Positions 2,241 through 25,383 of a stretch of DNA of 64,000 nt are shown here, one piece after another. The notes under the pieces are model-generated. The model ran no database searches, was not told where the DNA came from, and saw only the letters and a list, made by a program, of their open reading frames with translations. Numbering within the stretch: position 1 is the first letter of the stretch; the number at the start of each line of letters is the position of its first letter. Origin of the DNA: Oopsacas minuta (taxonomy: Eukaryota > Animalia > Porifera); contig JAKMXF010000111.1 in NCBI GenBank assembly GCA_024704765.1, positions 1,623,627 through 1,687,626 of the forward strand, read 5' to 3'. A program made the translations under genes and the position numbers.

Positions 2241-2474
2241 AGTTTTAGACCTGAAATAATTCTCAGACACAGAAGCCAAAATCAGTCCGACCTGGAGCAG
2301 TGCGGTATCTACACGAGAGGGCTATGACCCCCCCAGAAAACTAAAAACTAAAAACTCCGAGCTGCACTACCACTCTGTTGGATGAACATTTTATCCAAGT
2401 AGATTGAGATCACAGAAAGTGAAGCGGGTTAAAAGTTCCCAATTAGGTTATTTAAAAATAAAATCTCTGCTTAC

Positions 2475-4881
2475 CGATTTGTATACAAGCTTAACAGCAT
2501 CCAGTAATAGCTCTAACTTGCGAAGTGGAGAATACATCCCTGCCAGTCGTGTGAAGATTTTGGTAACTTCTCGTCTGGTTCCCTCGTCAGGAGGGATTAG
2601 GTTTTCCTAAAAAAAGATTGTATGCAGTATAACTTCGCTGCCGGGAGTATCAATTTCGAGCCTATCCCTCGTTCTATGTTAACTTATACAAAGGTTTCAG
2701 TTTTAAGGTGGTATCGTATTTAAGCGAGTATAAGATTTTAGAGATTTCTATATGGTTGACTGGTAATCTTATTTGTCCTAAGAAATTATTTAAATTTTAT
2801 AAGTGACATTGGTATATCAACTGATAGGGTATGATGTCATATTTTAACATGTTCATTGGTTTGAGTTGAATTCAAGAAGATGCTCACAAAACACTTTACA
2901 ATGAATACGAAGTAATATAACACAGTTAATAATTATAGAAAGTCTTCAATTTCTGTGCGATTTATCATAGTTAAACTAAGTAGGCGGGATATATACGTAT
3001 TTAATAATAATATTATAATTTATAGAACAATGTTCGTTACTTGGTATTTAACAACACAGCAGTAACAATTAGTATAGTTTGATATCCTGATAAGATCAGA
3101 AAGGCAATGCTCTTCCAAACTGGTGTGTCTCTTATTATTACATTAACCAATCCCGTCAGTAGATTAGCTGCTAGGAAGTAGATCAACTGGTAGCTATTCA
3201 CTGCTTTTAACAATTCGGGCTGGAGTTGTTTGATGCTTAATCTATTCTCACTCTTGGTTTCTTCTATTTTTCGCTCCTTGTTTTGCTCCTGCTGCTGCTG
3301 TGAATGTAGAAGAAAGGCAACGAGGATGTCTACGAGGAGGAATATGACTAAAAAAGAGAGTTGTATGGACAAAGTCCAGAGACAATAAGGTAGATTGGCT
3401 ACACATCTAGAGATAGGCTGTATGTATTCTTGACTAAGCCATGTAACTATCCATGTAAAAGCAGCTAGCAGAGATAATTGGATAATCCTTTTAAAGGATT
3501 GGTAAAATGTAGACATATTGTGGTGGAGCAAATGTCCAATTGAAATGCTAGCTAGGTAGATCCAGGATAATCCAATCGAAGAGAAGATCCCCTCCCTGTT
3601 TGAATTCAAGAATCCTTCTCTGATATCAGTGCAGTTTAAGCATGGCTCAAACCTTCCATATTGTATGTAATGAGTGAGTCCGTTGTTCAGAGCCCACTGG
3701 TAGAGTAGAATGAGTGGAAGAGACCAGAAGAACATCAGTGGAAAGAATGAGAGTGGGAAGAGAGAGGTCACTCCGAATGCTACAAGACGTACAACAGCGA
3801 TAGTTAAAAAGAAGTTCCAATGGACGCCATACTCAGTAACAGGCTGATGATAGGTGAAGAGATGGAGGAGAGCTAGACGTCCTAAGCCTATAAGTATGAT
3901 GAGGGAACATGATTTAACAGTGCATGCTAGCCGTTGAGTAAAAGAGCTCTTGAAGTACTCTCTTGGTTTTGTGATACACTTCAATACTAGGGCACTCATA
4001 CCGATGTAAGTTCCTACTCCAATGTCCATTAGTGTAGCCCCAAACAACTCACTCTTATGGAAGCGGACAGGAAATATAGAAAAGTCGACAGCAAGAATGC
4101 TGATACACGACAGAGCATTCACAAATGAACGAAAATTTGTGAGGAATTGCTTGTTAGTATTTGGATATAACGGGATTTTCCAAATTATTTGGTAGTTAGT
4201 AGCGATAAAATGATGTGTAATCATAAACAAGATCACTGTTGTTACTACTACAGTTATAATAATTTCATATACAAATTCAGACAGTAGGGTGAAGCAGAGG
4301 ACAGATGGGAAAATAAGTAATATTCCATCTACAATATGCCAAGTTAGTGAGGAAGATTGTGGGAGTTGCCGACACCTGTCGTTAATTAGAATCAAACTTC
4401 TAAGGAAGAGCACTAAAGGAGCTACAAGTACCAATAGGAAGACTTCAAGAAGACTCATGGAGTGGGTAAGTTTGTAAGAAACTTGTATCAATTGATTGTT
4501 ATGAATTTTTATCTGATAGCTAATAATATACAGAGGACATAAGAATAGATATGATTAGCAATCCTTACTTTATTGGTTGGTGATTATATTAAGTTACATT
4601 TATGGCAAAACGTTTTAACGCCTTATTTGCTTCTTTAGGTATGCCCCTTTGGAAATATTTTATGCTCTCGAATTCTTCTAAGTAACTTTTTCGAATAACC
4701 TCATAAAAGTTGTATGGGGTTCAGTTATGATTGAATTATTAGGTCCTAGGTTGACTAGCATAGGCCTTGTCGGCTATCCGATAGACTTCTTATGATTTAA
4801 CTTACCCTAACTCCCAAATAAACTGGTGACTTGGATACTCCTTTGTCAATGTTAATAGATATCTTTTCTAGGTCTTTATTC
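2475..4881 (-). CDS. Exons at the start of the VPS9 region (4881-4806 and 2606-2475), flanking the PIGW-containing intron
   Basis: KNKDLEKISINIDKGVSKSPVYLGVR|ENLIPPDEGTRREVTKIFTRLAGMYSPLRKLELLLDAVKLVYKS matches the RIN VPS9 motif MYSPxxKxxLLLxxxKLxY. Donors are AGG|GTAAGT at 4806 and TCG|GTAAGC at 2475. Confidence 0.85.
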
Positions 4882-7800
4882 CTGAAGATAATAAGTATTT
4901 AGTTTAAATAAATTATATAATTAATCATTATCGAGTTTCACACAGGACTGGGGTTGGTTAACAGAAATACGTAATGAGATCAGGGATGGTTCAAAAATCG
5001 GTTAACTGGTTAACCGCTGCAATACAATTACTCGTGTATACAACAAACGATTTTGGCTCAAATTAAAATATCCATCCATAGCTATTATGTGTGCTATGAT
5101 GATACGATTGTATTTGACAAAATGATTGAAATTAGAGGATACCAACTTAAAATGTAACATCGCATAACTACTTAACCTGCAGAATTCGTAAATAAACATC
5201 ATTTTGTCCTCTTAAAACCCTAGGAACAATGAATAAATTGGTGGCAACGACACTGTACTATTCCGTTAACCGATTCCATCTTAAAAGGGGTATTGGATTC
5301 GGGTTCTCGGGTCGGATCGGATCGGGTTTAGGTTCGAGTTCGTGATTTGGGTCAAATCGTGTATAAAATCTTAAATTGCTGGTTATAATCAATGTTCAGT
5401 ACAATAACATCTAAGTGCCTTTCAGTGACCTTATAAAAGGAGATAATATTGTGATCAGATTTGAAAAACTAATTAGGTACAATATATTTTTCTTTAGAAC
5501 GTAGCACGTAGCATGTAGCACGTAGCATGTAGCATGTAGCATGTAGCATGTAGCACGTAGCATGTAGCACGTAGCATGTAGCATGTAGATATTTCACACT
5601 TTTATACAAAACGTTCTATAATATGTATCCAGACACCAGACAAAGGTTTCGGGTCTGGTCGGGTTCTAAATTAGAGCCTAATTCCAACTCTGATCCAACA
5701 CTGATACACATATATTACTAAAATGATAATTTAAGTTCCCACTTTTTGTGAGGTTATTATAATGGTGTAAGCCATGCCACGGTTAGTATTGTTGGTCTTA
5801 AAGTGCTCTCCAATCCCCACTTAGTGGTCTTTCACCATTTATTGAGGCATATTTCTATGGAATATGACTAACATTATTTCTACAATCTATACCTCAATGA
5901 TAGACTTTCTGCTGTTTGCAATTGACATAAACTTGCCAATATGTATATGACCAAACCAGTTGATATTCAAATCCTTAATTTATTAAGACTTATGTGATCA
6001 TAAATTACAGTGGAGGTATACACATCATCTACTATGAGTACCACTGGGTAATAACATCAGAGAATATATATGACATATTTTATTACTTATTTATTTATTA
6101 CGTGTATACTTGCAATACTTCAGTACTCACTTGCTGAGGTAGTATCTGATCTGTTTGATCAGATGCTCGTATATTGGTCTGAGTATAATATTGTAAAGAC
6201 AATTTTCACAAATTGCATCAAGTCTTTCGTTTAGATCATCCTCTGACTAAATACATATATCATCAACATTATATAAATCGCTGACTTCTTGAAATATTCA
6301 ATCAATTAGTTGGAATAAGCGTATAATTATAATATGTTGATCATTTTTACCTATTTTGAATAGGCGATAAAATGGGTCATTTCGTTATATCTGAGTTCAA
6401 TATAACGGAAGTCGACTGTATCTTAAATTTCATACCCTAGTATTTATCTTAAAAGCTATGTAAATTCGTGAACTAACAATTATCTTTCATATTTAAGTAA
6501 CATTTGGAATGATTGCATGACTTACTATCTCAACAGATTCTCCCTTAGTTGCATTCTCCGTTATCTGTCCTCTAAATTTACGTGTCATCACGTCTATCTT
6601 TTCTGTTAACAGATGTTTCTTAACACCATCCAAGAATCTTCGTACCTATATGCATCCACATGGTTAATTATTAATACTTGTAGCTTTCGTAGTTTGATGC
6701 AGACACTAAGCTCTAATAGTGGATAGAAATGAAACCTAACTAGCTCCAATAAATACATGATTGCATAGATGGAGCTTTTATGTATGCAGATTGAAAAAAT
6801 CTAAAATTACAATATGTGCCTACAGCTTAGTCAATTAATTAATCCTGTCTAAATTGACTCAAGAAATTAGAGGCACTAAGTGTATTAGGTTAAATTTAAC
6901 ATTTTTATAGTGCCTCAATTACTAGTGCCAATTTAAACAAATTTAATTAATAGACTAACCCATCGTTTCCGGCTATTTTCACCTCTGGACCGCCTATACC
7001 AATTTTAACAGATTCTGTGGACCCCTGCTGTCTTCCGTGGATCACCAAGGGGTCCATGGACCCCAGATTGGGAACAGCTGGACTAAGCAGTCGATACAGA
7101 TTTTAATTTTAGATTTTTGCTCGCTACGCTCGCAGTTTATGGTAGATATAAAACAAATATTTGTCTATTGTTTAATCTTGCATTTTGACAAATTTTGAAA
7201 ATTTGTTATGTCATAATCAGCCACACTAGTTGCAGAAAAATTCTACCTCTTATAAAAATGGTGTTGGAAGCATTATAGTATTCCGTGACGTCATGTTGAC
7301 TTAGCAAATATATATATAATTTTTGTGAATGTTGCAAACACTAATGTTTCATCTAATTTTTCGAAAATTTTTGAAATTTTCTTTGTCATCACCATATCCA
7401 CTATCGTGATGTCATGATTATTATGGAAATTGTATATCCCATTTAACATACACTTCAGCAATTGTAAGTATTATTCTATATCTTATATAAATTTGTGAAG
7501 TCATATTGACTGAGCCAAAATTTACAAAATTTCTGAGTGTGTCTAAACACTCATGTTTTCGCTACTAGTATTATATTTCGAAAACCTAATGTTTCATCGA
7601 ATTTTTCGAAATCTCGCCTTTGGAAATTTTGCCTTGTCATCACTTGATGACGTCATCGTTTGGTGCCTAATGCGTCCGTCCTGACATGTACTATACATCA
7701 TCAAGCAGAAGTATTATTACTCTGGTACCGATATTTATTATTCCATACCCTAGCGATTGTGTACTTAGTTTGTTGAATTATATCAAAACCATTGTATACT

Positions 7801-10800
7801 AACCTCCTACTACAATTTTGCTCCTAGCATTATATTAACCAAAATCCTAATATAATTCCTATGTGAAAATTTTGAAAGTGGCACAAAAGTGGCCAGTGTG
7901 TCAGATCAAAAATTGTGACGCTCAGTGCACACTGCACGTTAATTGTCCATCTACCCTGAATATTTCAGCTCTTAATATATAATAGTTTTGACTGTGCGCT
8001 AGCGATGGATAAACAATAATTTATGCAATGATTTCAATACTGAGCCTTATTTATGCTAAAGAATAGTCGGCACAGTAATAATCCTAAATACAAAAGTTAA
8101 ATTATTATTCAAAGAAAATAAAGTTGGTTTATTCATAAAATATATGAAAATGACTAAAGTCAAATTTGATAGAGAATATGCTATACGAAAAAGTTATCTC
8201 TATTGTACTATTAGCTAGTTATACGCTATGTAGTTGAATTACACGAACAAACGGTGATATAATGACTAGAAGACAATATTCGTGCGGTGGAACTGAAACA
8301 TGTTCCCAACTAACAGCGGCCTTAACTAATGTAAATACCTATCTAGTAGGTAAAACTAGGAACCTTGAAAGTTGATTGCAATTTGTTATGCTATACTAGG
8401 GATCGACCGGGGGGCACAATTCTCGGCCGGGGCCGGGACTCGGTCGATCCCTAGTTCCTCAAGTCCAACCTAAGTGCTGTTTGATTTGTCTCATTCAAAT
8501 TACTTCAAACACCACCTGACGTAGTTCTTCCTAATCAACCTTTCGAAGAAATTGATGATGATAGCGAAGATTTAGATGGATTATAGAGATACATATATAT
8601 TTTGATTTAGTATCTTGCATAAAATTTCTTCGTTCTAAACCTATCATATTTTGCTTTTTGAAATACTCTTAGCATAAATTTCATTAAACACCCCGGCTGG
8701 CCAGGGGCCGGGTTCTCAACTTTTTAGCCGGGGCCCTGGTCGATCCCTATGCGATACAAGATAAGCATAATAAAGTAGAACTTCGTTAGGACGGACACGA
8801 ATAAGGTGAATTCCGATTAGTGAGTATAGTATTCCATTCTCCATGACAATTACTTGCAGCCAAAAACTTTGGTTAATACAACTTAATAGTTAATACGAAA
8901 TCCGATAAGGAGTACGCATTTTGAAAAAATTACAGTAAAATATGATAATACCGAAGTGATTCTTTACCCCCTATAGCTTTAAAGTTATTGATTTTCTCAG
9001 CTTGCAATGAAATGAAACTGGGGTCTCGAGCACTCAGTTATTATGTGAGTTTACTGTATATTAAATGTTGAATGCAAAATTGCTGCATGAAATAAGGCAG
9101 CATAGACGATATTCAAGATACAACAATGTACCATGAAAAAATTAAAAAATCGAATTTCATACTGTAATAGTGTTGTTTATATTTCCATAAAACATGTCGC
9201 ATGCAAGAAAGTACGTATTGTCTTTGGTGATCTTAAGAAAGCAGGCAAAACCTTTAGTCAGGCAGAACATGACCTAGTTTTTATGTGTAGTTGAAATTTT
9301 TCATTTAAATATTATATTAACCATAGATTGAGGTTGTCATCAAATATTTAGCCGAATACTCATCGAAATTGATGAGCAATTTTAAAGGTCATCAAAAATT
9401 GATGCCCTAAAAATAGTTCATCAATTTCGGTGAGTATTCTTTACACCCAAAATCATGTTCTGCTTGACTAAAGGTCCATTAAATGGAAATTGAATTGACC
9501 ATGGATAATAAAAAATTTAACCTCGAGGGACGTACTACCGAGTATATCCCGTCGCTTAGCGACTTAGTGCTTCAGGTTAGCTTAAGAATATTAATACTTA
9601 AGCTAACCCCGAGGCACTAAGCTGTCGCGGAGCGACCTAGCGAGCGAAGCGCGGTAGTATATATATATATATATATATTTGTAGAATTATAAATCGTTTT
9701 GTTGGGGATAATCCAAATTCTATCAGCAGGAAACTCTGTACATAGTGTCTAAGTATTGTTTGTATTTCCCGGTCACAATGTACTGAGTTCCAAGCTGATA
9801 GTATTTGGATTGTCCCAAACAAAACTATTTAGAATTCGGCAATTATATCAAAGGCGTCGTTACCTGGAAATTCAAATATTATATACATTTTAACATATTC
9901 AAATGTGTCCTAAAGTGGTACTTTCAAGTGGCTAAATATAGAAATTCCATTGCTGGCAAAGGGCCAGAAAATTGAAATGCATTATATACGAGTCATACAA
10001 TGGTAAAATAGTCTCAAAAAAACTATGGACTCGAATGCATACCGTAGCTCAAGTTCTGACGGACTATTAAATTAGGAAATCAAAACAAAAACTTAACATC
10101 GGATATATAGGTGCTTCTTTCCGCCCCAAAATATATATATCAATTTTCGTGAAATAGGACCACAAGAATTCGCACAGCTGCACAGACGTACGTACGTATG
10201 GATGCCGCATAAAGTCCATACCATTAGTCCACCTTCATATAGGAAATATCAGTGGGTCCCAAACCTGCTCTAAAGTCTTTTCAATATTTACTTTTCCATC
10301 ACCTTGTTGACGTTTGAGAATAGCTTTAATAAAACTGTTAATTTTATTACCCATGGGGTGGGTCCAACCGTTTAATCTATAGAGAAAAGAAGAATTTAAA
10401 GAAGAGTTTTAAAAAAGTTGAGTAGAAACAGTACTCAAAATATTCCAATTCTGTAAATACTCCCTAACTCTGTGAAACTATTTCAATTAGCTTTACCCCA
10501 GCCGGGGGCGTGGTGGCTAGGGACGAGACAACGAGAACTCGTTTTGGGCCCCGACATCATGGCCCCCATAAATGTATCTTGCACTACTATATATTGAATA
10601 TTATTTCACCTTATGAGAATGCATGCTCAAGTATAGTCCCTAGAGCTGTCAGGGGGCAATTTTGGTTTCGTGGGACCAAAATTTCAAAGTAGAAACAATT
10701 AATCATTAAATTTTGGGTCTAACGGTAACAATTTTCCAGGGAAACAAAGTTCTCGTGAAAGATCAATATTTTAGCATAGAGCCGTGAGATTTATCCAAGG

Positions 10801-13800
10801 CATATCTTGCATCCGCGACTGGACCCTCAGACTATGCTAGTTTGTAGTCCTTTCTGAAGGACCAGCACACCCTGACCCCAGCGTATTTCTGATGGCAAAT
10901 ATTCACAACTATATATACTGTTTTATCAGGTAAAATTTAACATACTATTATAGTGCCTCCAATTACTTTGCCACGTTAAAACAAATTAAATTAATAGACT
11001 AAGCAGCCGACACAGATTGTAATTTAGATTTGTTGCTAGCTAGGCTAGCAGTTTACGATAAAATCGTTTAGAAACATTCCAATTTTGTTTAAAAAATTCA
11101 AATTTTAGAAATTTGCTATGTTATCACTATCTCCACAATAGTAACGTCATGTTTATGGTGGCCAATGTGTCCGTCCTGACATCAACTACACTTCATCAGT
11201 TGGAAGTATTACTCTAGCAGTTATAGTTAACGAGATATTCGCCTTTCAAATTTTCTGTGGTTAATGACGTTAAGATACCAGTTGGACATACTAGGGAAGA
11301 AAATTTCCCAAATATAGTCATCTGAACACTTAAACAACGGGGAATTCAACGGTGAGTACGAATATGGCGATATAAAATCAGTTAGAGGATTAGAAAATGT
11401 TAGTAGCAGGGGGATTGTGGGGGTTTACTACCGACAAAATGTAAACCGTTATAAAAGTTTTTCCCCAAAACGGATTTTAGCGGATTTTGGATATGTTACT
11501 CTACGAAGGTTTGCGCTTATAATGATGCCATATTCATTTGTACCAATTTTTTCCGGGTTGAACTCTCCAACGACCAGATTGTGTACTAAAGTTTGCTGAA
11601 TTATATCAATACCATCTTATACTGTACATAACCTACTACTACCACTATTTTGCACCCAGTAATATATTAACCAGAAACCTAATACAATTCCTTTGGAAAA
11701 TTATGAAGTGCGCCAAAAGTGGCAAATTGTGTCAGATAAAAAATCGTATATTTTTATTGTGTGAATAATTATTATAGATAAAATACAAGGAATTTATAGT
11801 TCTCAATATAAATGTTTGTTCACAAAGTAAGTTATTCAAAGCAAATATAGATTGGAAATCAGAACAATTAATGTGGAAAAAACGAAATCTCAAATCACCG
11901 CCTGTGTCGACGTAATATCCCCTTAGGCCACCAGATAGGGCGTAATTTGGTAACCACATGTCTGTTGAGAGAAAGTCTCTACTAATATTTAGAAATTTGA
12001 TAATTGGTTTACTATCCATTCCTAATTCGACAAATTTTACATATCATATGCGAATTCGGATTCAGCGTACTCAAATACCCATGTATTGCAGTTAAAAGCA
12101 AGTATCTACGTACATTTTGATATTTCAATTTTGTCTTTATATTCATAAAAAGTTAAAACAAGAATAAAATTACAATACCGATGTCGGTAAATCCGAAGTT
12201 TACTGTAGTACTATTTACAACCCGACGTCTCAATCGTAATTACCTGTTTATGTACATCACAACTCTCTGTGTAGGAGTCCTCTGTTTCTTGAATTTACTC
12301 CCTAAAAGCAAACACAAATAACAATACGTATATAAGTAGGTACGGTGAAACATACTGAAAATGCTGTTAACACCCACTTTAACTGTTGGCTCTACAACTT
12401 ACAATTCTTCAAATAGTGACAGTCAATTGGAGGTATTAATAGCCATTCGCGGTAATAAAGGTAAATAGTTCGATGATAGTAATTATATATTTGAACAATT
12501 TATCTCAAATTTAGTTAATAGAGATAGTAATTTACTAATTATATTTAAATGATAGCTGTTAACAGCCACAATTTACATATTATTAGAAGAGTCAAAATAT
12601 CAGTTTCCGTGACCAACCTCTGGCTAGTAAAATTTGATGGTCTAATTGGTACCTTAGGGTATTTGTTAAAAATAAGCTCCTAGGCAGGTCTGAGAAATGT
12701 GAGCAAATAATTATGTGGAGGGTCCTAAGGCTACCGACAGCCCAAATTGAAAAAATTTATTAATTCATAGATATTGTTGATGACCTCAGGGAGTTCATCA
12801 ATTTTGAGCCATCAAAAGGGAGGTTATCAATTATTAGACTAAATTTATTCATTAAAATATCCAAAATTACAATCTGTACTGACAGCTTAACCAATTAATT
12901 AAATTTGTTTGTCATCATACTCCACTAAAGTCTACGTATAGTGACGTCATTATTATTATGGGAAAGGTATCCCATTAAACATCTACTACACTTCATCAGT
13001 TGCAATTATTATTCTATCTCTTATGAAGACGGAGATATGAGCATTCTAGTGATCCGTCATATATGTCATTTAGCTTGTACACGCCAAAATTCTGGGAACA
13101 CCAAGATTAATCAACTCATCCGCGGCAGCCACACCTCCCACGAAGTTTTATATACGTTAAATTGTGATGTAACTCCTATTTCTGCAACCAACGACTGGGC
13201 ACCTTGATATGCATTTCTACCGCGAGTTATTCCAGTTCATCCATCAAGATTGTACCGTTAATTGGGACTTTGCGTTCCCGGGCATTGCGAAATCATATCA
13301 ATAAAGCTTCATCCAAATTCCATATTTAACAGCTGACTTATTTCGCTTTGGATTTGGTTACATACTAGTATAATCACGGTATTTGTTCTTTCTTTTAATT
13401 TTAGCACAGCACTTTGGGAAATTTTATATTTTTTGCTTCTTCATCTTGACCAATTCTTGTACGAAGATATAGGAAAATATTATAGTTGGATCTCTTTTTG
13501 GTGTGGGATTGGAAATATTATTCCTATATGATACATATTCTTAAATAGTATATTCCGATATAGTGTACCCACTGTATTTCCCCTGGACTACTGAGTATAC
13601 ATGCTTGGATGTTGTCAAGGGTTTTTTGAGGCGGGATTATAGGGTGATTTCTATAAAACATAAAATATACGAATCCACCATCCATGGTTAAATCTAATAA
13701 GCATGTAGGGGACCATTTTTGTCAAAACAGGGTACGTAGATTCTAATTTTTTACTGTGCCGACTATTCTATAGAGTATAGTGGCTCAGTACTAAAATGCT

Positions 13801-16800
13801 GTCTCAATTCATTTTGAGTTGCCAAAAAACTCATTTTTACTGTACTGTTATAGTATAGTATAGTATAGTATAGTATAGTATAGTATAGTGGGCCAGTATT
13901 GAAATGGGAACCTATATTTTGTTTCTTTAACCGTAGACGGTGCACTGCCAAAACCACGAAGTAAGGGCTGAAACTTTCAGGGTACATGGATAATTAATTA
14001 ATTACTGTGCGGTTGACGATCACTTTGCGCCACTTTAAATTTTCCTATAGGAATTGTATATGTATTAGGTTTTAGTTATAATAATAATAGAGGAGCAAAA
14101 TCATAGTAGGAGGTGATATGCAATATACAGTGGTATTAATAGAATTCCAAAAACTTAGTACATATTAGCTAGACTAGGGAAGAATAATTATCGACACGAT
14201 AGACACAATTTGCGTGACGTCATGAACCACATAAATTGGAAACGCGAATAACTCAATAACGATAACAGCTAGACTGCAGAACTCGGCAAACTCCGGCCTG
14301 CGGGCCAGATCTGACCAGCTAGATGAATTTATCCGGTCCTCGAATCTTTCAGAAATTATTATACTTTTCAGGCTTATGAAAATGTTATCCAAAATTGATT
14401 CAGTTATAGCACTAATAATAGCCCTTACGATAATTTGGAGGCAATAATTGAAAGAAAGAAAGAGTGGGAAGATATTGAGTGAATTAGGTATGATGCTACA
14501 TAAATTTGTTCTGACATTATTTGGGTTTGATCTCTCCACAATATAAATTTAACAAAGTTTAGAACTTTAACCGATTACGGCCGAAGTGTTACTTTCGTAA
14601 CGAAAAGGAATACTAAAATTTCACTACTTCGTTTTAACAAATTCCCGCACTCAAATCGAGATTTTAGCACTTTTTGACTTAATAAAATCAAACATTTTCC
14701 CGGCCGAATTCGGTTAAATCAATATTTGAATACAAGTTTAATAAGTAGATCGAATTTCTAAAGCATTTTGATTTACTTAATGGCATTAGCATGTAAAAAC
14801 GAAAAGTAGAACTTGACAATCGCGTATTTAAGCAAAGTTGGTCAGATCAGAATTTATTAATATGCAGGGAAAAATGCCACTTATCTTTTATACGCTGCAT
14901 CTGTTGCTGTGATAAAGGAGTCCAATTTGAAACCACATTACCAGACAAAAAATTCGGAAAATTTCGATTCTCTTACTGGTGCAGCGAGGAGTAAGATTGC
15001 ATATCTGCAAAGGTCTTTAACTGAGCAACAGAGTAAATTCTTACTTTCTACTAATGAGTTAGAGAATACTACACGTGCTGGTTTCGCTATAAGCGTATTC
15101 ATTGGGAAGCGAATGAAAGCTTTCACTGATTGTGAATTTGTGAAGGAGTGTCTTCTAACTGTGGTAGATAATGTATGTCCGGAAAAATTAGATCTTTTTG
15201 CTAAGATTAGTCCCTCAGCAAGAATCGTTACTCGAAGAATTGAAGATTTCATTACACAAACTCGCTCAACAATTTGAATTATATTCAATTGCACTTGATA
15301 AGAGCACTGATTTGATTGATTCCCAGGTTACAATCTTTATAAGAGGAATCAATCCAACATTTTAAATTACACAGGAATTAGCAAGTTTGGTTTCACTAAA
15401 GAACACCACTACAAGTGTAAATATATTCCAAACAATTCTAAGTGTCATAGATAACTTGGACTTAAATAAAATATTTGTGGGGTAACTACAGATGGTGCTC
15501 CAGGTATGGCCGGAAAGGTGAAGGGAGCAGTTTCTCTGATAGAAAAAGAAATGAGAAAGAAAAGAAAAGAGGCAAGAATGCATCGTATCATCCATCTCGA
15601 GGCCATTTGCGCAAGATCTCTGAAGATGCAAGAAATAATGAGTGTAGTCATAAAAATTGTGAACTCTGTGCATGCAAGAGCTTAGATCATCGTCTATTCA
15701 GCAAATGTTAGAAGAGATGGATTATCAATATGACGAGTTATTATATTATTGCGAATAGGCTGGTTAAGTAGAAGTGCAATGTTGCAAAGAGTTTACCAGT
15801 TGAGAGCAGAATCGAACACTTTTTTGAGACAGAAAGGGATCCAAGTTCCAGAGCTCAGTGATGCGAAATGGATTAGAGATTTTGACTTTCTAGCGGACAT
15901 CACAAGTCATCTAAGTATGCTAAATTCGAAATTACAAGGAATGAATCAATTCATCAACGTCTTCTATGAACGCATTTATGCATTTGAAGTTAATTTACAA
16001 CTATGGGAGTTTCAATTAAAAGAGAGTAATTGTATTCATTTTTCTACACTTCGCCCAGTTTCTTGTTACACCGAATTCATAACTGATCTCAAAATCATCC
16101 AACACTCGATTCGCAGATATGGATAAGCATCGGAAGTATTTTAGCTACTTTGTGATCGTATTTGATGTGTCCAAAATTTGTGATGCTCCAGAAATGTCAG
16201 GACGAACGATCACGTTACCATGGTAGAGGTGATGATGAGAAAGCATTTCGAGATTTCGATGAATTTAACCAAATACATATAGTGCTTCCAACTACTAGTG
16301 CCACTTTAAACAAAATTAACCAATACACCAAGCTGTCGGCCCAGGTTGTAATTTTAGATATTTTGTCTACCAATCATTCATTTTAGCGCTACTAACTCAT
16401 TCAACTCATTCAAAATAATGAGTTTATTTACCAACTCATTTTTATAGCCAAGAGTTAAACTCGAAATAATGAGATTGTTACATAATAACTGATGCATTGC
16501 TGTTACGCGGGAGCAAAATACATTGGTACATCAAATCCCTAGATGATTCCAATTCTTGGAGCAGATAATCTACCTACTTTTCATACTTCCAGGTCCGATT
16601 GGCGTTGTCAACTCATTCATTTGATAACTACCAACTCATTCAACTCATTCAAGAAAATGAGTTGATTTTGCCAACTAAAAATTAGTTGATACAGCCCAGC
16701 GAGTAAAATGGTTGACCTTCTTAGCATATATATACATATGTGTTCTCTTTCCTGTTTCACACCTTTAGAGATTAACACACGAAATTTGACATGTATACTC

Positions 16801-19800
16801 GTACTGACATCTAGTTGTGCTTGGCACCTGACATTTGAAAATTTTAATGTTTATATTTTCAAACCTTTTAGGTGATTAATCATATTTCATACATTTCTAT
16901 GCAAATTTTATACGCATGATAGGGATCAGGTTTCAACATGTTATCATGGGCTCAACAGACATACAGGGGTAATCTAGTACGCTGAATCCGAATTTCGCAT
17001 TATCAATTTTCTCATATGTGAATTTACTGTTGATTTTATGAATATTAAGTAAACAAATATTTGTAATATAAATCAGAAATAATGGAAAATTATGTCGGTA
17101 GAGACGGTGGTGTTATCTTTCAAACCTATATCCACCTAAATGATTAAATTTGAACCAACAAATAATGAACGAAATATGAATATAAATTTAGGGCTGTATC
17201 GGATATCCGGCCGGAACCGGATATGAAAAATGTTCTATCTTATATATAAAAGATGAACGAATGCAATTCAAATTCATACTGCTCTATTTGTGGATTCTTT
17301 TGAAGCCTCACTAAATATACAAAAGCCTAGTATTTGTACAATGTAATAGAGAATAAGCAGAACATGTTCTTGATGTAATATTATTGATGGCATAATTTGT
17401 CAAAAGGATATTTAATCGGATAATCAGATATCCGGGATATGCGCGGATCTGGCCGGAGTAGAGAATCTCTAATCTGGTACAGCTTTAAAAATAATAATTT
17501 ATTTAGATAGGCCTAATATCAAATAACCAACTTCTTAATTTGTCTCTGTGTAAATTTTCAGTACCAAAATCATCATCGTTTTTAGGGACTTCACCGTTAT
17601 CAGTTGTGTCCGTGTTGCCTTTACAACTACAAGAATAGATAGATAATCTATGAAATGAGATACATTAGAGGAGACTTATTCACTCGACATTTAATAATTA
17701 TAGGTATACTACATTAATATTTATTATTAAATTGCTATTTATTTGTTGTCTTTATAAATATAAAGTAAACAAATAATTGAAATCATAAAATATACAGTAA
17801 CTTGCTCTGAATAGGTAAATGAGGTAAAAAAAATACGCTGAATCCGAATTTCGCATTTTCAAGTTTCTCACATGTAAATTTATTGTTATTAAATCAAAAA
17901 ATAGTTCCAGGAACTTGATTTCAAGGATTATTCTATGGCAGGGGTGGGCAAACCCGCGGACCAAATGTGGCCCTCCGATAAGTTTCACTTCAGAAGTCAG
18001 AATAAGGAACAACTTCGCCTAGGAAGACTTATTTAAACCCGAAATGTCCTATGCATAACATTGCATTAGACGTTATCAAGGAACACCTGCATATAAGGCA
18101 GGGTTCCGCAGCCTGTGGTCCGTGATCCCAGAAACCACAATGCACAAGTTTGCATTGTGGATTCTGGTAAGGGATCGACTGGTGCAAAAGGTTGTGGAAC
18201 ACTGATATAAGGGACACTTTTTATCTGCCACAAAGTGTTCCTTGTTCAGAGGTTTTTCCGCATATATTCACTTTTCTTTGAACATTTTCGAATATTACGA
18301 ATGAAGAAGATAATTGAGTAATCAAAGTGTTGCTTGATAAACTGGTTATTCTACTCTCGATAAATCGATGTCCACAGGTCATGCCAGATCTGCAGGACCG
18401 ATTGGGCCGGCCTTGCCTAGCATGCTTGTAACCATGGCCATGTTGTAACTTAAGTCATTTGGTTGAGCTACTACATAATGATATATAGAGTCCTAATGGG
18501 TCACTAGATTGGTCATGGGTCAAATGTTTGAAAACCTAGCCGATTAATAATGTGCAAAGTGAGGTGAGAATGGGTTCCAATGAATTTATTGCAATACACA
18601 TAAAAATGTACCCATTAGATTCATATTGTTTCTCCTAGTTCAAAATTAGTTGCTCTTGATAAGCTTAGCCTTAAAAACAAGGCTTGTCACGAAAAAATGG
18701 CCAGGCTTGAGTTCTTTTAGAAGTAGAGTTAAATTCATCCAAAAATTTACGAAGAACTCCAAAACAAGTAGAGATACTGGCAGATAACGCAAGGTATATT
18801 CGCGAATTCGATAACAAACCCATATCCTCTGCCAGGAACGCTTCAATATACACCTGTCAGCAAAGGGTGCCCAAAAAATGTAAGCCAAAAAGAGACCATG
18901 CTGGACACGAATCCAAGCAAGATTTCAAATCCTCGTTTCAAACAGTAAATATATATGATAGATAGGACATGGTAACGCCAGGTTCTTTAGCTAATTCGAT
19001 AAAAATACCATACACTCTGCCAGTAACGCTTAAGGATGGTGCCCAAAAGTTTGGTTCGCCTCTCTAACGAGGTGGACCATGCTGGCGCAAGATTTCAAAT
19101 CCTCGTGTCAAATAATGGAGATAAATGACAGTAAAATGGTCCGGGGACCAAATTTGGAGTATAGGGACCATTTTTGGCTTGACAGGCTCACCATAAACCA
19201 TTTTTTGGACTAAGGAAATCTAGTATAGAAGAGAAGCTCCTAAAGTAGGTACTCTGTGCAAATCGTGATACTAACTTGAAATTTGGCAGAGAGATACTTT
19301 AGGACATTTTAACAGAATACTTTCGGGAAATGTGTGATTTTATGACTTCAAAAGTTGCTAAAATCTCGATTTATGTACGGAAATTGGTTAAAACAAAGTG
19401 GTAAATTTGGGTGTTTCTTTTCTTACGAACGTAACACCTCGGCCGTAATCGGTTAATAGAAGCCACGGGATCTCATCTTTAAGTAATAATTCTGATACAA
19501 TAATGTCCGTCCCTCTGTCGAACAGTTAGGGGACATTTCAAAAATGCATAACTTTCTCAAATGAATTAATCATATTATTATTGAGAAATTCGTAATCAGC
19601 ATTGAATTTTCAGCAATTTGATGGGTCACATGACCAGATTGCGTTGTCAAGGAGAATTTTTTCCAACATGATCATGTGACCCCTTTAATGAAAGGAAATT
19701 TCATGCCAGTGTTGCTTCTGTTTTATATCTATTAAAATGTCCTAATGTACCTCTCCGCCAATTTTCATGTTAGTATCACGATTTGCACATACTTGGTGCT

Positions 19801-22800
19801 TATCCGCTGTACAAATAGTACGTAGTGTAAGGTAAATATTATATTAGCATATACAGTAAAACCTCCAACAAGTGAAAACCTCCAAAATATGAACACTTTT
19901 CTTGGTCCCAAATTTTTTCCCATTATTTTACATAGTGGTCACCCCTTTAGAATGTGAACACCCCTGAAAAGTGAAAGTGAACACTTAATTTGGTCCCAAA
20001 TGTCTAAATTACATAGGATATGACCTCTTAAAAGTGAACATCAGTTTTTCTGCCAGATTTTTGACTAGCTGTCAGCTTTGTTATCACACTAGTTTTGAAA
20101 GCAGGGATGTTTGATGATGTGGCTTCACAATATACTAGAGGCTTCCTACTACAATGGGCAGAAGAGACAACATATTTGACTGTACAATGCTTTCACACAT
20201 TTTACTACTACAGTTTGTTGAAAAACACTTTATGATAAACCATGAAAAATGAACACATCTCAAAAGTGAACATTTTGCCGGTACGCAGGGTGTTCACCTT
20301 TTGGAGGTTTTACTGTAGGATGGTTACATACCACACAAACAGTTCTTTTATGCCCCATGCAATACAAATATGTAAAATATCATGTCTCTAAACTTGAGTT
20401 ATAGTAATGACCATGGATGGCAATTCTTTGTCAATATCCATTTATAAGTCAAAAACCCTCAATGATATAACAACACTCACTATACCCGATTTTCCCATAC
20501 CCTTATAAGTTATAATACATTTTGATATGATAACTACAATTATTGAACAGTGATCAATAATGCCATTTATGGTCATATTCAAGATTGCGTCATTGTCGTA
20601 GGAGATATCATATAAAATTGTATCATAAGGTATGAGAAGTCGGGTCTCTGCTATAAACCGGCAATAGTAAGGATCGTTAGATTATTGAGGGTTTCGACTT
20701 ATAAATGGATATTGACAAATAATTGCCACATCCATATTCATTACTGTAACTTTATCATGGCAATTTTATGTGTTACAAAAGCATCTTTTACATCATTTCG
20801 TACATTAACTCTGAAATAAAAGATGCGATATTTAACGTTTTACATCTCAACAAAGAATGGGCCATTTTCTCCAAATAATGCTTACCAAGCAAAGAAATTG
20901 GCACATTAAAAAAATTTTCTTTTTGGGATACACTGAATCAAATATAAACTATATGTAGAATATGAAATGCTATCATATATGATAGATACAATGACAATAG
21001 ACATTACTTTAAGCGACTCTTCGAATGCAGTAATTGGTTTACGTATATCAAACCATATTCACCCACCTTTGAGGCTTAGAGTGTAACTTTCCATTTCTCC
21101 CTTGCGTGAGGATATTATTATTGTCATAGTGCCCATTCATGGGGTCTGATTTAAAATTTTGAGAATCTTTAAGTGCCCGGATAATCTTGTCACCACTCTC
21201 CTGATTGAACCTTGTCATCTTGCATGCATCGTCCTTTGGAAACTGAGATCTATTAAGGGTTTGCACATGTCTTGGCCATTGATTTGCCTTCCCGTTTGCT
21301 AATGGCTGCATATAAGCAGAAGATGTAATTCCTTGTGAAGAAGTTATGTTGTTGTTAGGACTAGGATGCCATGGTGTATTTCTTACATTACTAAGTACAT
21401 TCATCCCTCGAGGCAGATCAGCAAAGTTTGTTTGGTTAACGTTGACCGAGTGACGCCTGGAAGGTGGAGGCGGTGGGGGCGGACGATTAGGAGCCACAGG
21501 AGACCTGCTCCTTCCTAAACGTTGTTCTCTACTCTGCCTCGTTAATTCTCGTACCTCAGTTGATCCAGAAAAAACTACTTTTCTTGCTTCTCTCTCCCTT
21601 CCAGAGAACTGTTCAGGTGAGTGCTGAGATCCACGTAGAATTGGCTTAGGCAATGTCCTGTCTATTGGTGAGGGAGCAGACCTCTTTCTACTTAACGACT
21701 CTTTAGAAGGTAAGTCTGTCTGAGCATTACGGTTGACGTTATAGCATTCGTGAGAGCTGGAAGAGCGACGGTGTTGTGGTAATTTTTCCCCTATAAATAG
21801 CTTAGGCTTTGGTAACAACGCAGGTTTATCTAGATTTCTATTTGGCGTTTCCAAAAGATCAGCTGAGTTAGAGCGCCTTAAATTATTCAAGATATCATGG
21901 TCAATCGAATTCCGAGGAGATGGCAATGGTTTGTTAAATATATCATCGTATAAGGGTCTCTTAGCCATCCGTTCTCCGAAAGCAAATTTACGAGATATTA
22001 CTGGGTCGTGTTTTAGCCTTAAAGGTGACAATGGTGCAATGGGTGGCATGCTGGGTAAACCTGATAGTTTGTTTACAGGTGTGAATCTGTTATAGTGGTA
22101 GTCTTTATTGTTAGGGTCATGTGAGCTCGAATTGAAATGACTTACTGGAGAATTAAATTTTTCGCGATACAACTTTCCTTGGGCAGATTGAAACCCAACT
22201 TCAAAAGGCTCTTCTAACGGTTTAATCCGTTTCATTGTGGCAATAGTATTGAACATTACATTTACATAGGCAGCAGGTGATTCTTCGTTCGAGCCATTCT
22301 GATGCTTAAGAGTGTGGTGAACCTGAAGTTCTATATCTTTCTCCATCTCTGAACTGGTCTCCCTCGGGTCCATGTCTAGATAGACGTCAGAGTCCCTGTT
22401 GCTCTGTGAGATGGGAACAAATTTGGACAAAGGGGGGGTTTCCTTAGGCCGGATGCAGTTATAGAGAATACCACTGTTAACTTCTTGTGAGGAGTCAAAA
22501 GCATCCTCATCATCCGGCAAGGGGGGAGTTGCTCCCCGTCTCTTGGTCTCAATGAGCATTGAAGCTGTCTTCGGAGGAATTGGAGGCGGTAAGAAGCCAT
22601 GCGAATGGCTAGAGTGGCTCTCTTCAGTGGTACGAACTCTGTGTATCGGAATTGAGTTGCGAAGGATTTCTCCAGGCTCGTCATATTCGTTCATATCTGG
22701 CGAGACTATATGACCTGAGTATTCCATTTCTGCCTGGTTAAGGTAGGTACGAGGAGGGACCATTGGAATGGGCTCCCGAACGTTAGAGTCAGGTGGAGTG

Positions 22801-25383
22801 TCATACTCAACACTAGCGTAATCTATAGGGCCCTCGTCCAGTTCTGGTGTTATGGATCGTTGGTGATAAGGATCCATGTACGGTCTGTGTTTTAAGTCGT
22901 TTGATGGTAAAACATTCAGGTTTGGATGAGATAGATGTACAGGATGTGCAGGATGACAGATAGAAGGAGAGTGAGAGGGTTGGGCAGGCATGTTAACGAG
23001 TGCTTTGGAGGCTGTTACAGGTCGCAAACTAGTCGCAGGTGGAGGAGGGAGAATTCTTGGTGTCTTAGGATTCATATTCGTTTGAACAGGAACGGAGTGA
23101 GTCTGTCTCAGAACTGGTGTATGTACAATTCCTCTTCCTCTAGGAGGGCATAATATTTCGTTGTTTTCTCCCTCTCCTGGGCCGGGGGGTGGGAAGTAGC
23201 CTATAAAAATATATGTACAATAATATCAGATCCTGACGAAGCCCTGTAAAAGCATTTTGAACAAATTTGTTTCATGCCAGTGAATTTTAGTGGCACAGTT
23301 AACAATGTTCTGAGACACACCTATTGATAAACATGTACAACTCCCCTAGACCTTGCCTATAGGCTCATTTCCTTAGTAACGTCCAGCAGTGCTTCATATT
23401 GCATATTTCGAGTATATATGAATCTATCTCGTTTGGAGCAAAATTTTAGTAAATTTTTCGTTAGATGATTCAGCCTGTTTAAGCGATACAACGATGCTTT
23501 TCTTAAAATTTACACTATAATATAATAATACCATCCAAATTGATTATTCAGCTAAAGTAGTCATGAATCAACATATACCTTGTATTGGGGAACAATTGTC
23601 CGCTTTCTTCTTAGGGGGTCTCAGTAAGCATGGCATACCACCACTAAAGTAGGAGAGGAAGTGAAATTAATATTCTACGAGATATGATTGACAAAAGCAT
23701 TATATTTGCTATTACCTCTGATAAGAGCAGAAATGGGCCAGTAGAGACGGTAGAGTTGGAAAGTATAAGTTAGAACCCTGAGCCTCAAAACCTAACAATC
23801 GTTTAAAATCACAACAGAACACAAATAATTATTTGTTTAATTATTCTAACGCTTCTAAGACCCTTTACGACGTGACGTACCAGCCAAGGAGACTTCCATC
23901 ATATTCAATACGGACAATACCCCACATTATGCATCATACCCGAATTCTCCCTTCTCACAATTCATAAGGGTCTTCAAACCTGATATGGTAATGATTTATT
24001 CCCTACTAGTGGGATTCAGGGCGTGATCTATCTGGTCAACTACCGCTTCGCGATTGTTTAGCATTTAGAATAGATTTTAATTAGGACTAATCATTCTCTA
24101 GGCGTGTTGACATAACTCGCTTATGACACTATATATATTGTTGGGATCTTATAGTACATTGTAAAACTTACCCAAATCAGATTTAAGCAAGAGATAATGA
24201 TTAACTGGTTTAGAAAGATTATCAGGAACTCGTATTGAGAGTGCAAAGGTGTTATCCTGGCTGGATTCCCGGACAATAAATTGCTAAATAGAAAAGCATC
24301 CAATAAAATGAGGTTAGAATTAGGTACATATAAGAGAGAAACATAATTAAGCAGTGTTATGAAATTGAATAGACTTACGCCTGCTTGGTTATTAAATAAC
24401 ATCTCGGTGGCTAGAAGAGAAATACAACTGAAATTGTAATGCTCGTGTTACGCGAGGTTTATTTAATACCAAACGCGAGTTTTAATCTCTTTTTGCAAGT
24501 ATCAGTGTATAATTAGAGATTTCGATCATTTGTTACATTATATTAAAATATTAATAAAAACAACAAGAATTTTACATAAGAGATTTGAAGGCAGCAAATT
24601 TAGGCAGCATCTCTGCTATAATTCCTTATATAAATATCCTATATTGTTTTAGACTGTGGTTTCAAGGAACGCATTTGCGTTCAACAAAGGAAACCTGTAC
24701 ACATTATTAATAAAGAAGCATTTATAATTACCTTCCTCCCTTTTTGCGCGAGCCTTCATCCATAAATTTGGGTGAACAGTGAGATATCTTTTTATTTCCT
24801 CTTCATTCTCGATGTGAGCCAAATCATTATCCTAGAACATGTCTACTCAATTCAGATAGCTCTAGCCAGTGATATGTTGACCAAAAGCCAATGTTCAGCC
24901 GGGAGAGCCGCAATATAATAAAGAATGCGAAATTTTTTGAAATTTTGTCTAAATAGCTTCAAAATAAAAAGCCTTTAAATATATCAAATAATATATCTTA
25001 CTTATATTTGCAAGACTTGATGAATCTTAACATGCTGCATAACAAACCGTTAGAACATTATTTTTTGATATCCAATCATACAATATAGTATTTATACTGA
25101 AGTAGATATTCGATTTGTATATCTTAATATCATTTTTTCACTACTTTATACTATGATTGAAATCGGACCATAACCTGCTTCATTTCTATAATCACTGATA
25201 TGAAATATTCCTGAGCAAAGAGAACCAAAAAGATTTGCGAGACAGTAACTGAAGCGCTCTTTGGCTTTTCATATAATATAATATTAATGTAGAGATGATA
25301 GTACATAGCAGGTACTAATAATATGAGTGTAGAGTGTAGATAGATACTTACCAATACTTCATAAATGTCATCATCATCATCTA
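2475..25383 (-). CDS. RIN: Multi-exon RIN/Sprint-like Ras and Rab interactor (SH2, Pro-rich region, RIN-homology region, VPS9); 5' and 3' ends incomplete
   Basis: Manually assembled exons (minus strand, GT-AG, splice phases match throughout): 25383-25352, 24831-24732, 24410-24379, 24283-24172, 23791-23716, 23643-23579, 23200-21067, 17626-17565, 12301-12244, 10376-10265, 6645-6526, 6246-6131, 4881-4806, 2606-2475. The spliced translation gives an SH2 domain, a Pro-rich segment, a RIN-homology segment and the start of a VPS9 domain, which is the RIN1-3/Sprint domain order. The paralogue cannot be assigned. The remaining VPS9/RA exons were not found and probably lie left of position 1. Confidence 0.85.
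3037..4491 (-). CDS. PIGW: GPI inositol acyltransferase PIG-W/GWT1, single coding exon; start uncertain (first ATG at 4458)
   Basis: 484-aa multi-pass hydrophobic ORF with the GWT1 motifs ILAVDF..FP.RF.K.E.FG.TLMD.GVG, TEYGVHWNFF, NREGIFSSIG and ISR..ANLPY.LW. Confidence 0.95.
   Translation of the reverse strand: MIQVSYKLTHSMSLLEVFLLVLVAPLVLFLRSLILINDRCRQLPQSSSLTWHIVDGILLIFPSVLCFTLLSEFVYEIIITVVVTTVILFMITHHFIATNYQIIWKIPLYPNTNKQFLTNFRSFVNALSCISILAVDFSIFPVRFHKSELFGATLMDIGVGTYIGMSALVLKCITKPREYFKSSFTQRLACTVKSCSLIILIGLGRLALLHLFTYHQPVTEYGVHWNFFLTIAVVRLVAFGVTSLFPLSFFPLMFFWSLPLILLYQWALNNGLTHYIQYGRFEPCLNCTDIREGFLNSNREGIFSSIGLSWIYLASISIGHLLHHNMSTFYQSFKRIIQLSLLAAFTWIVTWLSQEYIQPISRCVANLPYCLWTLSIQLSFLVIFLLVDILVAFLLHSQQQQEQNKERKIEETKSENRLSIKQLQPELLKAVNSYQLIYFLAANLLTGLVNVIIRDTPVWKSIAFLILSGYQTILIVTAVLLNTK
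5500..5588. repeat. 7-bp minisatellite (YGTAGCA)n, about 12 copies
   Basis: Direct reading of the sequence. Confidence 0.95.
6131..12301 (-). CDS. RIN-homology region exons (12301-12244, 10376-10265, 6645-6526, 6246-6131)
   Basis: Spliced translation: KKQRTPTQRVVMYINRLNGWTHPMGNKINSFIKAILKRQQGDGKVNIEKTLEQVRRFLDGVKKHLL...LDAICENCLYNIILRPIYEHLIKQI. This parallels the recalled RIN2 segment TPEKR...FG.LVQDY...LQTIRQFMTQVKNYL...LEKAMHKCILKPL. Confidence 0.8.
6900..7950 (+). repeat. Unclassified dispersed repeat, TGACGTCA-rich; other copies about 10945-11750 (+), 12900-13050 (+, partial) and 14015-14165 (-)
   Basis: Shared blocks such as ATAGTGCCTC...AATAGACTAAGCAG.CGA.ACAGATT, TGCGTCCGTCCTGACAT and CCTAATA.AATTCCT...AAAGTGGC...GTGTCAGAT. 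Confidence 0.75.
8397..8749 (+). mobile_element. Non-autonomous hAT element with an extra internal TIR
   Basis: TIR TAGGGATCGACC at 8397 and reverse copies at 8442-8453 and 8738-8749. The 8-bp flanks TGCTATAC / TGCGATAC differ at one base. An internal FLKSNL remnant resembles the end of a hAT dimerization domain. Confidence 0.75.
8933..9056. mobile_element. Small pogo-type MITE
   Basis: TA|CAGTAAAAT...GAGTTTACTG|TA with imperfect TIRs. Confidence 0.5.
13050..13480 (-). mobile_element. pogo/Tigger (CENP-B HTH) transposase relic
   Basis: The minus strand reads NLDEALLI*FRNARERKVPINGTILM...SRWLQK*...HNLTYIKLRG, the CENP-B-type HTH signature, with in-frame stops. Confidence 0.75.
13849..13889. 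repeat. (TATAG)n microsatellite
   Basis: Direct reading of the sequence. Confidence 0.95.
14277..16126 (+). mobile_element. Decayed hAT transposon (Buster/SPIN/GTF2IRD2-EPM2AIP1-like transposase), frameshifted
   Basis: Left end CAGAACTCGGCAAACTCCGGCCTGCGGGCC at 14277. Coding remnants from the ATG at 14780: KRKV...RVF...W, VIKESNLKPHYQTK, FTDCEFVKECLL, ALDKSTD, TTDGAPGM, RIGWLSRSAMLQRVYQLR, FLADITSHLSMLNSKLQG. No right end was identified. Confidence 0.9.
14560..14720 (+). repeat. Dispersed repeat starting TTAACCGATTACGGCCGAAGTGTTA; copies about 19320-19456 (-), 29318-29560 (+), 43165-43215 (-, partial) and 45143-45290 (+)
   Basis: Direct visual identity of about 130-150-bp heads in five places. 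Confidence 0.8.
17189..17487. mobile_element. hAT-like MITE with ATCCGG/CCGGAT subterminal motifs
   Basis: TAGGGCTGTATCGGAT ... ATCTGGTACAGCTTTA; no clean TSD. Confidence 0.55.
19854..20315. mobile_element. pogo/Tigger-type MITE
   Basis: TA|CAGTAAAACCTCCAA ... TTGGAGGTTTTACTG|TA, with internal AAAAGTGAACA repeats. Confidence 0.9.
20397..20751. repeat. Inverted repeat with ~70-bp arms (MITE relic)
   Basis: TTTGTCAATATCCATTTATAAGTC (about 20427-20450) matches GACTTATAAATGGATATTGACAAA (about 20696-20719) in reverse. Confidence 0.7.
21067..23200 (-). CDS. 2134-nt internal exon of the RIN-like gene, proline-rich and low-complexity (ORF track 21048..23075)
   Basis: The frame is open from the acceptor TATAG|G at 23200 to the donor CAAAG|GTGGGT at 21067. 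Phases match the flanking exons 23643-23579 and 17626-17565. It carries many PxxP and Tyr motifs. Confidence 0.85.
23579..24831 (-). CDS. SH2 domain of the RIN-like gene, split over five small exons
   Basis: Spliced translation: HPNLWMKARAKREEATEMLFNNQAGQFIVRESSQDNTFALSIRVPDNLSKPVNHYLLLKSDLGFEAQGSNLYFPTLPSLLAHFCSYQSGGMPCLLRPP. It contains the FIVRES (FLVRES-type) motif, and the HPxW start and closing segment resemble RIN-family SH2 domains. Confidence 0.9.

Follow-up and report, generated by a model that had tools for sequence, protein, structure and literature searches.

The window analysed here is the whole 64,000-nt stretch of DNA from the hexactinellid (glass) sponge Oopsacas minuta found at C111:1623627-1687626 in a 61.46-Mb assembly of 365 contigs. 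Its minus strand carries part of a RIN-like gene and, inside one intron of that gene, a PIGW/GWT1 gene read in the same direction (Table 1). The two host exons that border this intron are exon 9, bounded by ...tcttcag/G and AGG/gtaagt, and exon 10, bounded by ttttttag/G and TCG/gtaagc. They translate to NKDLEKISINIDKGVSKSPVYLGVR and ENLIPPDEGTRREVTKIFTRLAGMYSPLRKLELLLDAVKLVYKS, respectively, and the junction between them is in phase 0 and reads ...VYLGVR/ENLIPP.... The longest ORF in the intron (4491-3037, minus) is that of PIGW, and there is no other long ORF inside the intron. The guest coding sequence lies wholly within a single host intron and on the host strand, which is the arrangement that defines a same-strand nested gene. 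An earlier note on this DNA had placed the PIGW ORF between RIN exons 4881-4806 and 2606-2475 on the same strand, and these coordinates are correct. The interspersed repeat inserted between the host donor and PIGW recurs on another five contigs, with 76-83% identity.

Table 1. Features of the RIN-like/PIGW locus, in window coordinates and in the order of transcription.
Feature	Position	Strand	Remarks
First host coding exon	24730..24822	minus	TTG in O. minuta, ATG start in the Vazella ortholog
Host SH2-domain exon	24152..24283	minus	Exon searched by itself matches Pfam SH2, E 6.5e-4; exon also delimited as 24170..24283
Two small host exons (SH2 end and linker)	23577..23807	minus	Short intron between them; P0121 alignment
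Large proline-rich host exon	21069..23201	minus	Bounds approximate
Host exon 5	12249..12299	minus	P0121 alignment; bounds approximate
Host exon 6	10262..10387	minus	P0121 alignment
Host exon 7	6526..6645	minus	tblastn of P0121 residues 905-944
Host exon 8	6130..6246	minus	End of RIN1-like (RH) domain; exon searched by itself matches Pfam RIN1, E 0.003
Host (RIN-like) exon 9	4806..4881	minus	Encodes ..NKDLEKISINIDKGVSKSPVYLGVR; GTAAGT donor at 4805
Host intron	4805-2607	minus	2199 nt, GT..AG ends, phase 0; encloses the entire PIGW gene
Interspersed repeat	4666..4790	minus	~125 nt
Stop-free stretch before PIGW ATG	4459..4554	minus	32 codons; P0001 enters via acceptor ctatcag/ATA, modelled exon from near 4512
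TATTAGCTAT block	4516..4525	minus	Starts 67 nt before ATG, behind a pyrimidine-rich stretch; candidate SL acceptor or core-promoter element
PIGW/GWT1 paralog A	3037..4458	minus	473 codons and TAA stop, no intron
ATTAAA, candidate poly(A) signal	3000..3005	minus	32 nt after the PIGW stop codon
Host exon 10	2475..2606	minus	ENLIPP...VYKS; contains the start of the VPS9 domain

The RIN-like host gene

The O. minuta host exons were searched one by one, and the full-length comparison rests on P0121, a complete 1141-aa ORF from the Trinity transcriptome of another glass sponge, Vazella pourtalesii (EukProt EP00800). This protein was found when the RIN portion of the public O. minuta protein P0001 served as query in a word search; it is 82% identical to P0001 over the queried region, and was mapped onto the window and 20 kb of upstream genome. 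According to tblastn of P0121, the host comprises ~14 coding exons over ~31 kb, from window position 24822 to ~6760 bases before the window start, and the last conserved O. minuta host exon matches the P0121 C-terminus.

P0121 contains an SH2 domain (residues 21-99; E 9.7e-9, 35.7 bits), a RIN1-like domain (873-973) and a VPS9 domain (1022-1124; 72.9 bits). In O. minuta, the RIN1-like (RH) domain PF23268 scores 32.8 bits on P0001:1-235, and VPS9 is detected with 44.7 bits on an exon ~6.2 kb before the window start (L005:3661-3861). The order of SH2 domain, proline-rich region, RIN1-like (RH) domain and VPS9 domain is that of RIN1-3 (Ras and Rab interactor). Unlike RIN1-3, the sponge host is without an RA (Ras-association) domain: the Pfam scan of P0121 gave no RA match, and the Vazella protein ends 17 residues after VPS9. 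The gene is therefore described here as RIN-like, since it has the SH2, RIN1-like and VPS9 domains of a RIN protein but is not a full RIN. Its predicted product would be a Rab5-GEF-type protein. Three ORFs in large host introns (14177-15697, 11735-12043 and 18649-18924) gave no Pfam family.

The intron that bears PIGW is located 13 codons ahead of the VPS9 domain. Exon 9 corresponds to residues 986-1008 of the Vazella transcript and exon 10 to residues 1009-1052, with the Pfam VPS9 match starting at residue 1022. Both Vazella isoforms, P0121 and P0122, have the SH2, RIN1-like and VPS9 domains and read ...KSPAYLGIR/ENLIPPDKETR... at this point, which corresponds to the two exons that flank PIGW; in Vazella pourtalesii the host mRNA is thus spliced across the corresponding intron. 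The earlier proposal that the flanking exons join in frame is supported by phase-0 canonical sites in O. minuta and by transcripts of a relative that make exactly that join. In O. minuta, splicing of the host pre-mRNA from 4806 to 2606 would remove PIGW along with the intron.

The nested PIGW gene and a second paralog

In the synthesis of GPI anchors, PIGW acts as the inositol acyltransferase, an activity that for the nested copy (paralog A, hereafter PIGW-A) is predicted from sequence. The nested ORF matches the Pfam GWT1 family (PF06423) with E 1.8e-98; the score is 330.8 bits, where the gathering cut-off is 29.6, and the match extends from position 15 to position 437 of the 437-position profile. 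The earlier note gave the ORF as 3037-4491, but 4491 is a TTG, a product of the bacterial-code ORF list, and the real start is probably the ATG at 4458, because the sequence MSL(L/F/C)E is conserved across relatives and the profile match begins at 4458. An exact look-up of the 473-aa product gave no recorded protein, and no Vazella PIGW-A protein was among the top matches listed for the PIGW-A protein search. Amino acid identity is 63-66% to P0002-P0005, from four ENA holobiont assemblies, 48% to P0008, from a Logan contig, and 33% to Branchiostoma PIGW over 455 residues. Like PIGW/GWT1 (glucosaminyl-phosphatidylinositol inositol acyltransferase) in general, the nested gene encodes a full-length GWT1 domain in a single coding exon. 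In the sea anemone Actinia tenebrosa, by contrast, PIGW is flanked by REX1B-like and Iml2/TPR39-like genes instead of being housed in a RIN gene.

A second GWT1 gene, paralog B, is present in O. minuta on contig C365 as an intact single ORF of 522 aa (GWT1 E 1.8e-103) that is 34% identical to the nested copy. Its ortholog P0046 comes from the same ENA sample as one of the nested loci (L008), where it lies between kinesin-like and ANAPC11-like genes. A maximum-likelihood tree of 27 sequences, from which other sponge classes are absent, unites the six nested copies (SH-aLRT 99) as the sister group of the C365 and P0046 copies (98). The placement of this combined clade relative to other animals and fungi is weakly supported (SH-aLRT 83). 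A further candidate for a sponge PIGW paralog, P0103, was rejected as a malawimonad sequence. Judging from the tree, glass sponges keep two PIGW paralogs, one of them nested, and the nested copy differs from PIGW/GWT1 elsewhere in belonging to a lineage-specific pair of sponge paralogs.

The second paralog bears on two suggestions of the earlier note. The first, that the nesting ties an essential GPI-anchor enzyme to a signalling gene, is weakened, since an intact GWT1 paralog exists both on C365 and in another glass-sponge assembly, so that the nested gene is not the only copy. The second, that an intronless ORF would fit retroposition, loses its force: paralog B is also a single ORF, and 9872 of the 16340 O. 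minuta genes are given as single-exon in a table of PMC10282587.

Conservation of the nesting in other glass sponges

The arrangement was examined in five contigs from relatives, L006-L010, which represent four ENA samples (holobiont assemblies) and one Logan run (SRR2064712, the source of L010). The last is treated as genomic because the contig contains unspliced host introns. Host exon 9, PIGW and host exon 10 follow one another on one strand in L006, L008 and L009, while L007 and L010 contain PIGW and the downstream flank (exon 10) only. The proportions of the locus vary. Exon 9 is separated from the PIGW ATG by 347 nt in O. minuta, 168 nt in L006, 1593 nt in L008 and 1505 nt in L009; it is not found within 10 kb in L007, and L010 begins 10 nt before the ATG. 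The distance from the PIGW stop codon to exon 10 is 430 nt in O. minuta and 85, 97, 772, 1849 and 336 nt in L006 to L010, respectively. The orthologous introns measure 1669 nt (L006), 3781 nt (L008) and 4773 nt (L009), and in L006 PIGW coding sequence makes up 1416 of the 1669 nt (85%).

The host exons themselves are recognizable in these contigs. Exon 9 has 68-78% amino acid identity to L006 9764-9832, L008 8333-8407 and L009 8421-8495, and exon 10 has 73-80% in L006-L009 and 59% in L010. Further upstream, exon 8 is 87% identical in L008 and L009, and the large proline-rich exon shows 54.5% identity to P0121 residues 126-822 and 51-53% to L008 and L009.

Because the same layout occurs in five independent glass-sponge-like assemblies, mis-assembly is excluded, and the comparison indicates that the exon/PIGW/exon arrangement is due neither to chance nor to an error of assembly, which the earlier note had named as a possible refutation. 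The same note had asked whether PIGW lies in the same RIN intron in related species, and it does, with both flanks in three contigs and the downstream flank in two. The PIGW ORF is intact in all six loci (O. minuta and the five relatives). Values of dN/dS for the nested copy are 0.28 for the pair L006/L007 and 0.26 for L008/L009, while comparisons of O. minuta with the other loci give 0.13-0.16, and dS exceeds 1; these figures indicate that the nested PIGW is under purifying selection, and hence that it is functional and that the nesting is old.

Signals flanking PIGW and the origin of its mRNA

Taken together, the locus is a conserved same-strand nested gene, in which an intact PIGW-A is housed in an intron of a RIN-like host, ahead of VPS9, and very probably has its own ATG and a separate mRNA. 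PIGW would be translated from the ATG at 4458, and reading from this ATG requires an mRNA that does not carry the long RIN ORF ahead of it. The 5' end of such an mRNA would have to be formed within the last ~85-170 nt before the ATG, and its 3' end at a poly(A) signal 30-55 nt past the stop codon.

The sequences in question are short. The earlier view that the nested gene has little space for a promoter and signals of its own is upheld by the 347 nt upstream in O. minuta, the 168 nt in L006 and the ~85 nt conserved between L006 and L007, whose collinear homology begins only 85 nt before the ATG. An alignment of O. minuta, L006 and L007 reveals a common block consisting of a pyrimidine-rich stretch, TATTAGCTAT, and then ..ACAATCA... 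As a general motif, TATTAGCTAT is not enriched in the window (15 matches, 10.9 expected). In L008 and L009, the sequences ...tcttgttag and ...tttctctcag, respectively, are found 22-24 nt before the ATG, so that each of the five species for which upstream sequence exists has a TAG or CAG behind a pyrimidine-rich stretch, at 22-62 nt before the ATG. All of these resemble 3' splice sites. In DNA of 34% GC, however, a YAG within 60 nt would be expected from chance alone, and what speaks for an acceptor is therefore only the short block conserved in three species.

Downstream of the PIGW stop codon, poly(A) hexamers other than that of O. minuta are AATAAA at +41 (L006) and +53 (L007) and ATTAAA at +39 (L010); neither AATAAA nor ATTAAA occurs within 450 nt of the stop in L008 or L009. 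The AATAAA of L006 is ~38 nt before the host acceptor, and with a poly(A) signal this close, guest polyadenylation and host splicing must compete over a few dozen bases. An Rfam scan of 2300-5100 identified no RNA family.

Hexactinellids have a trans-spliced leader (PMC7986045, PMC10282587). It is about an even question whether the 5' end of the PIGW mRNA is made by spliced-leader (SL) trans-splicing at the acceptor-like TAG/CAG 55-62 nt before the ATG, on a precursor that might start from a short promoter of its own or from that of the host.

A more extreme arrangement deserves consideration, in which PIGW-A has no promoter at all, is transcribed only within the RIN-like pre-mRNA, and is freed from it by SL trans-splicing and by polyadenylation just ahead of exon 10. 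The compactness of L006 would fit this arrangement, with the host donor 168 nt ahead of the ATG, the host acceptor 85 nt past the stop codon and an AATAAA close to that acceptor, as would the mere 85 nt of upstream sequence shared by L006 and L007, the pyrimidine-rich stretch and TAG/CAG before the ATG in five species, and the existence of SL trans-splicing in the lineage. Against it, the leader was found on only 4% of the long reads of A. vastus (PMC10282587), and operons are unreported in hexactinellids (PMC7986045). Moreover, a core promoter of 85 nt is possible, and the 1.5-kb gaps in L008 and L009 leave space for a normal promoter. A promoterless guest is thus a tentative reading, and clearly the less probable one. 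If it were true, each host transcript would give either the mRNA of a Rab5-GEF or that of a GPI-anchor enzyme, the two genes would be co-regulated, and the intron would contain an operon-like unit retained from before the divergence of the glass sponges sampled.

The public gene model

The separate PIGW mRNA favoured here is at odds with the public O. minuta protein P0001 of NCBI, a 721-aa model named PIGW-like in which RIN exons are joined in frame to the PIGW ORF at ...VYLGVR/IKIHNNQ.... Taken at face value, this model describes a RIN-PIGW fusion isoform, formed by splicing from the donor at 4806 to an acceptor near 4512, in which an SH2/RIN1-domain protein would be fused to an acyltransferase. 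In O. minuta the 32 codons ahead of the ATG are indeed free of stops, the acceptor ctatcag/ATA is compatible with the phase-0 donor, and the Braker model may have used RNA-seq hints. In the relatives, the stop-free stretch before the ATG amounts to only 10, 4, 7, 1 and 1 codons (L006 to L010), and in-frame stops thus lie 1-10 codons before the ATG in five of five, so that a fusion has not been kept by selection and there is no conserved frame link between PIGW and the host.

P0001 is, in addition, a patchwork. Its first ~70 residues come from 14941-15327 and are missing in the Vazella transcript, and the SH2 and proline-rich exons are omitted. The O. minuta annotation was made with Braker 1.9 / Augustus 3.2.3 and TopHat -I 5000, and the genome paper is silent on both nested genes and trans-splicing (PMC10280926); Augustus by default predicts no nested genes (PMC10282587). 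Given the stops in the relatives, the RIN-PIGW fusion of P0001 is most likely a gene-prediction artefact, and a genuine fusion isoform is very improbable. With P0001 a chimera and the RIN-like gene split and partly missing in the public annotation, the public models could mislead inventories of GPI-anchor or Rab5-GEF genes in sponges.

That the locus is an assembly artefact, or a decaying PIGW retrocopy that merely sits in an intron, has a negligible probability: the ORF is without introns and the second GWT1 gene could be the working copy, but the layout recurs in five further assemblies of independent origin, none of the six loci has a broken ORF, dN/dS is 0.13-0.28 despite saturated synonymous sites, the GWT1 match spans the full profile, and four sequencing runs, which may be the source sample, contain 0.62-0.93 of the sampled words of the stretch.

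Relation to known nested genes and operons

Nested genes have already been reported as a hallmark of glass-sponge genomes, and the PIGW/RIN-like locus is a well-kept ordinary example of them. PMC10282587 describes 2432 nested genes in the curated annotation of Aphrocallistes vastus (12.4% of genes), many of them conserved, and lists only 83 for O. minuta; Augustus-type automatic annotations, that of O. minuta included, are stated to miss such genes. The emphasis of the earlier note on same-strand nesting as unusual thus does not hold in this clade, where nested genes account for ~12% of a curated gene set and are often conserved. Like the nested genes of A. vastus, PIGW-A has a single exon, lies wholly within one intron of a longer gene and shows conservation among glass sponges, and the automatic O. 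minuta annotation models it wrongly; its orientation can be stated, whereas the passages of PMC10282587 consulted give no breakdown by strand. The RIN-like/PIGW pair of host and guest was not found named in the glass-sponge literature searched. The new results are a correction to the public gene models, the duplication of PIGW, a RIN-like host without an RA domain and a very compact locus.

The nearest parallels outside sponges come from nematodes and tunicates, with their same-strand intronic genes and their SL-resolved operons. Differences from the operons are that the guest is inside an intron and not between genes, and that operons are unreported in hexactinellids (PMC7986045). The likenesses are a same-strand gene with an acceptor-like site just before its ATG, a poly(A) site close to the next processing signal, and a lineage that has SL trans-splicing. 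The locus is not a new kind of system; it is a deeply conserved and compact test case for how a same-strand guest acquires its 5' and 3' ends within a host intron, in an animal lineage with SL trans-splicing.

Host gene start and public model

At window positions 24820-24835 (minus strand), the ATG that starts the Vazella pourtalesii RIN-like transcript (MANIENEE) is matched in Oopsacas minuta by a TTG (LAHIENEE). Three codons upstream of this TTG is a TAG, immediately 3' of an acceptor-like ttctag; downstream of the TTG, the frame first reaches an ATG after 21 codons. The host gene could thus begin at a non-AUG codon or in an exon further upstream, or its N-terminus could be shortened.

The public 721-aa RIN-PIGW model (P0001) omits the host SH2 and proline-rich exons. 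Its residues 1 to ~70 derive from an ORF at window 14941-15327 (minus strand), inside an 8.8-kb host intron; this ORF matches no Pfam family, and the Vazella transcript has nothing corresponding to it.

Surroundings of the nested PIGW gene and its paralog

Two repeats were located in the host introns (see table), and the interspersed one has copies on contigs C325, C177, C302, C6 and C307 at 76-83% identity. Between the loci of the two closest relatives (L006 and L007), the conserved PIGW/exon-10 block, running from 85 nt upstream of PIGW to exon 10, inclusive, is 89% identical; directly at its edges the two loci differ by kilobase-scale insertions.

In the host intron that follows the PIGW-bearing one, bounded by exon 10 and a small exon (IRDKKHPNKTDLSLGAD), there is a leucine-rich-repeat gene antisense to the host. 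Among the loci from five glass-sponge-like assemblies, this gene is kept in four (L006-L009) and is missing from L010, where the orthologous intron is only 196 nt long. Further on, the 3' end of the host gene faces a convergent dynein-heavy-chain-like ORF, which occupies the same position in L007-L009.

Features of the host locus and the second PIGW paralog
Feature	Location	Strand	Remarks
Short tandem-repeat stretch	window 5414-5615		host intron upstream of exon 9
Interspersed repeat, ~125 nt	window 4666-4790		immediately 3' of host donor
Leucine-rich-repeat gene, 188 aa	L005:4568-5131 (4869-5432 bases before window start)	+	LRR_4, E 7e-15
Dynein-heavy-chain-like, single ORF of ~1556 aa	L004/L005, 8939-13615 bases before window start	+	Pfam MT and AAA_9 on orthologs
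Insertion differences, L006 and L007	L006:11637-13971; L007 upstream of 9916
Second GWT1/PIGW paralog	G000:C365:717956-719371 (L012:1456-3021)	minus	intact, 522 aa

Oopsacas minuta also has a second GWT1/PIGW paralog, with 34% identity to the nested copy. Its ortholog in another glass-sponge assembly (P0046) has a kinesin-like gene on one side and an ANAPC11-like gene on the other.
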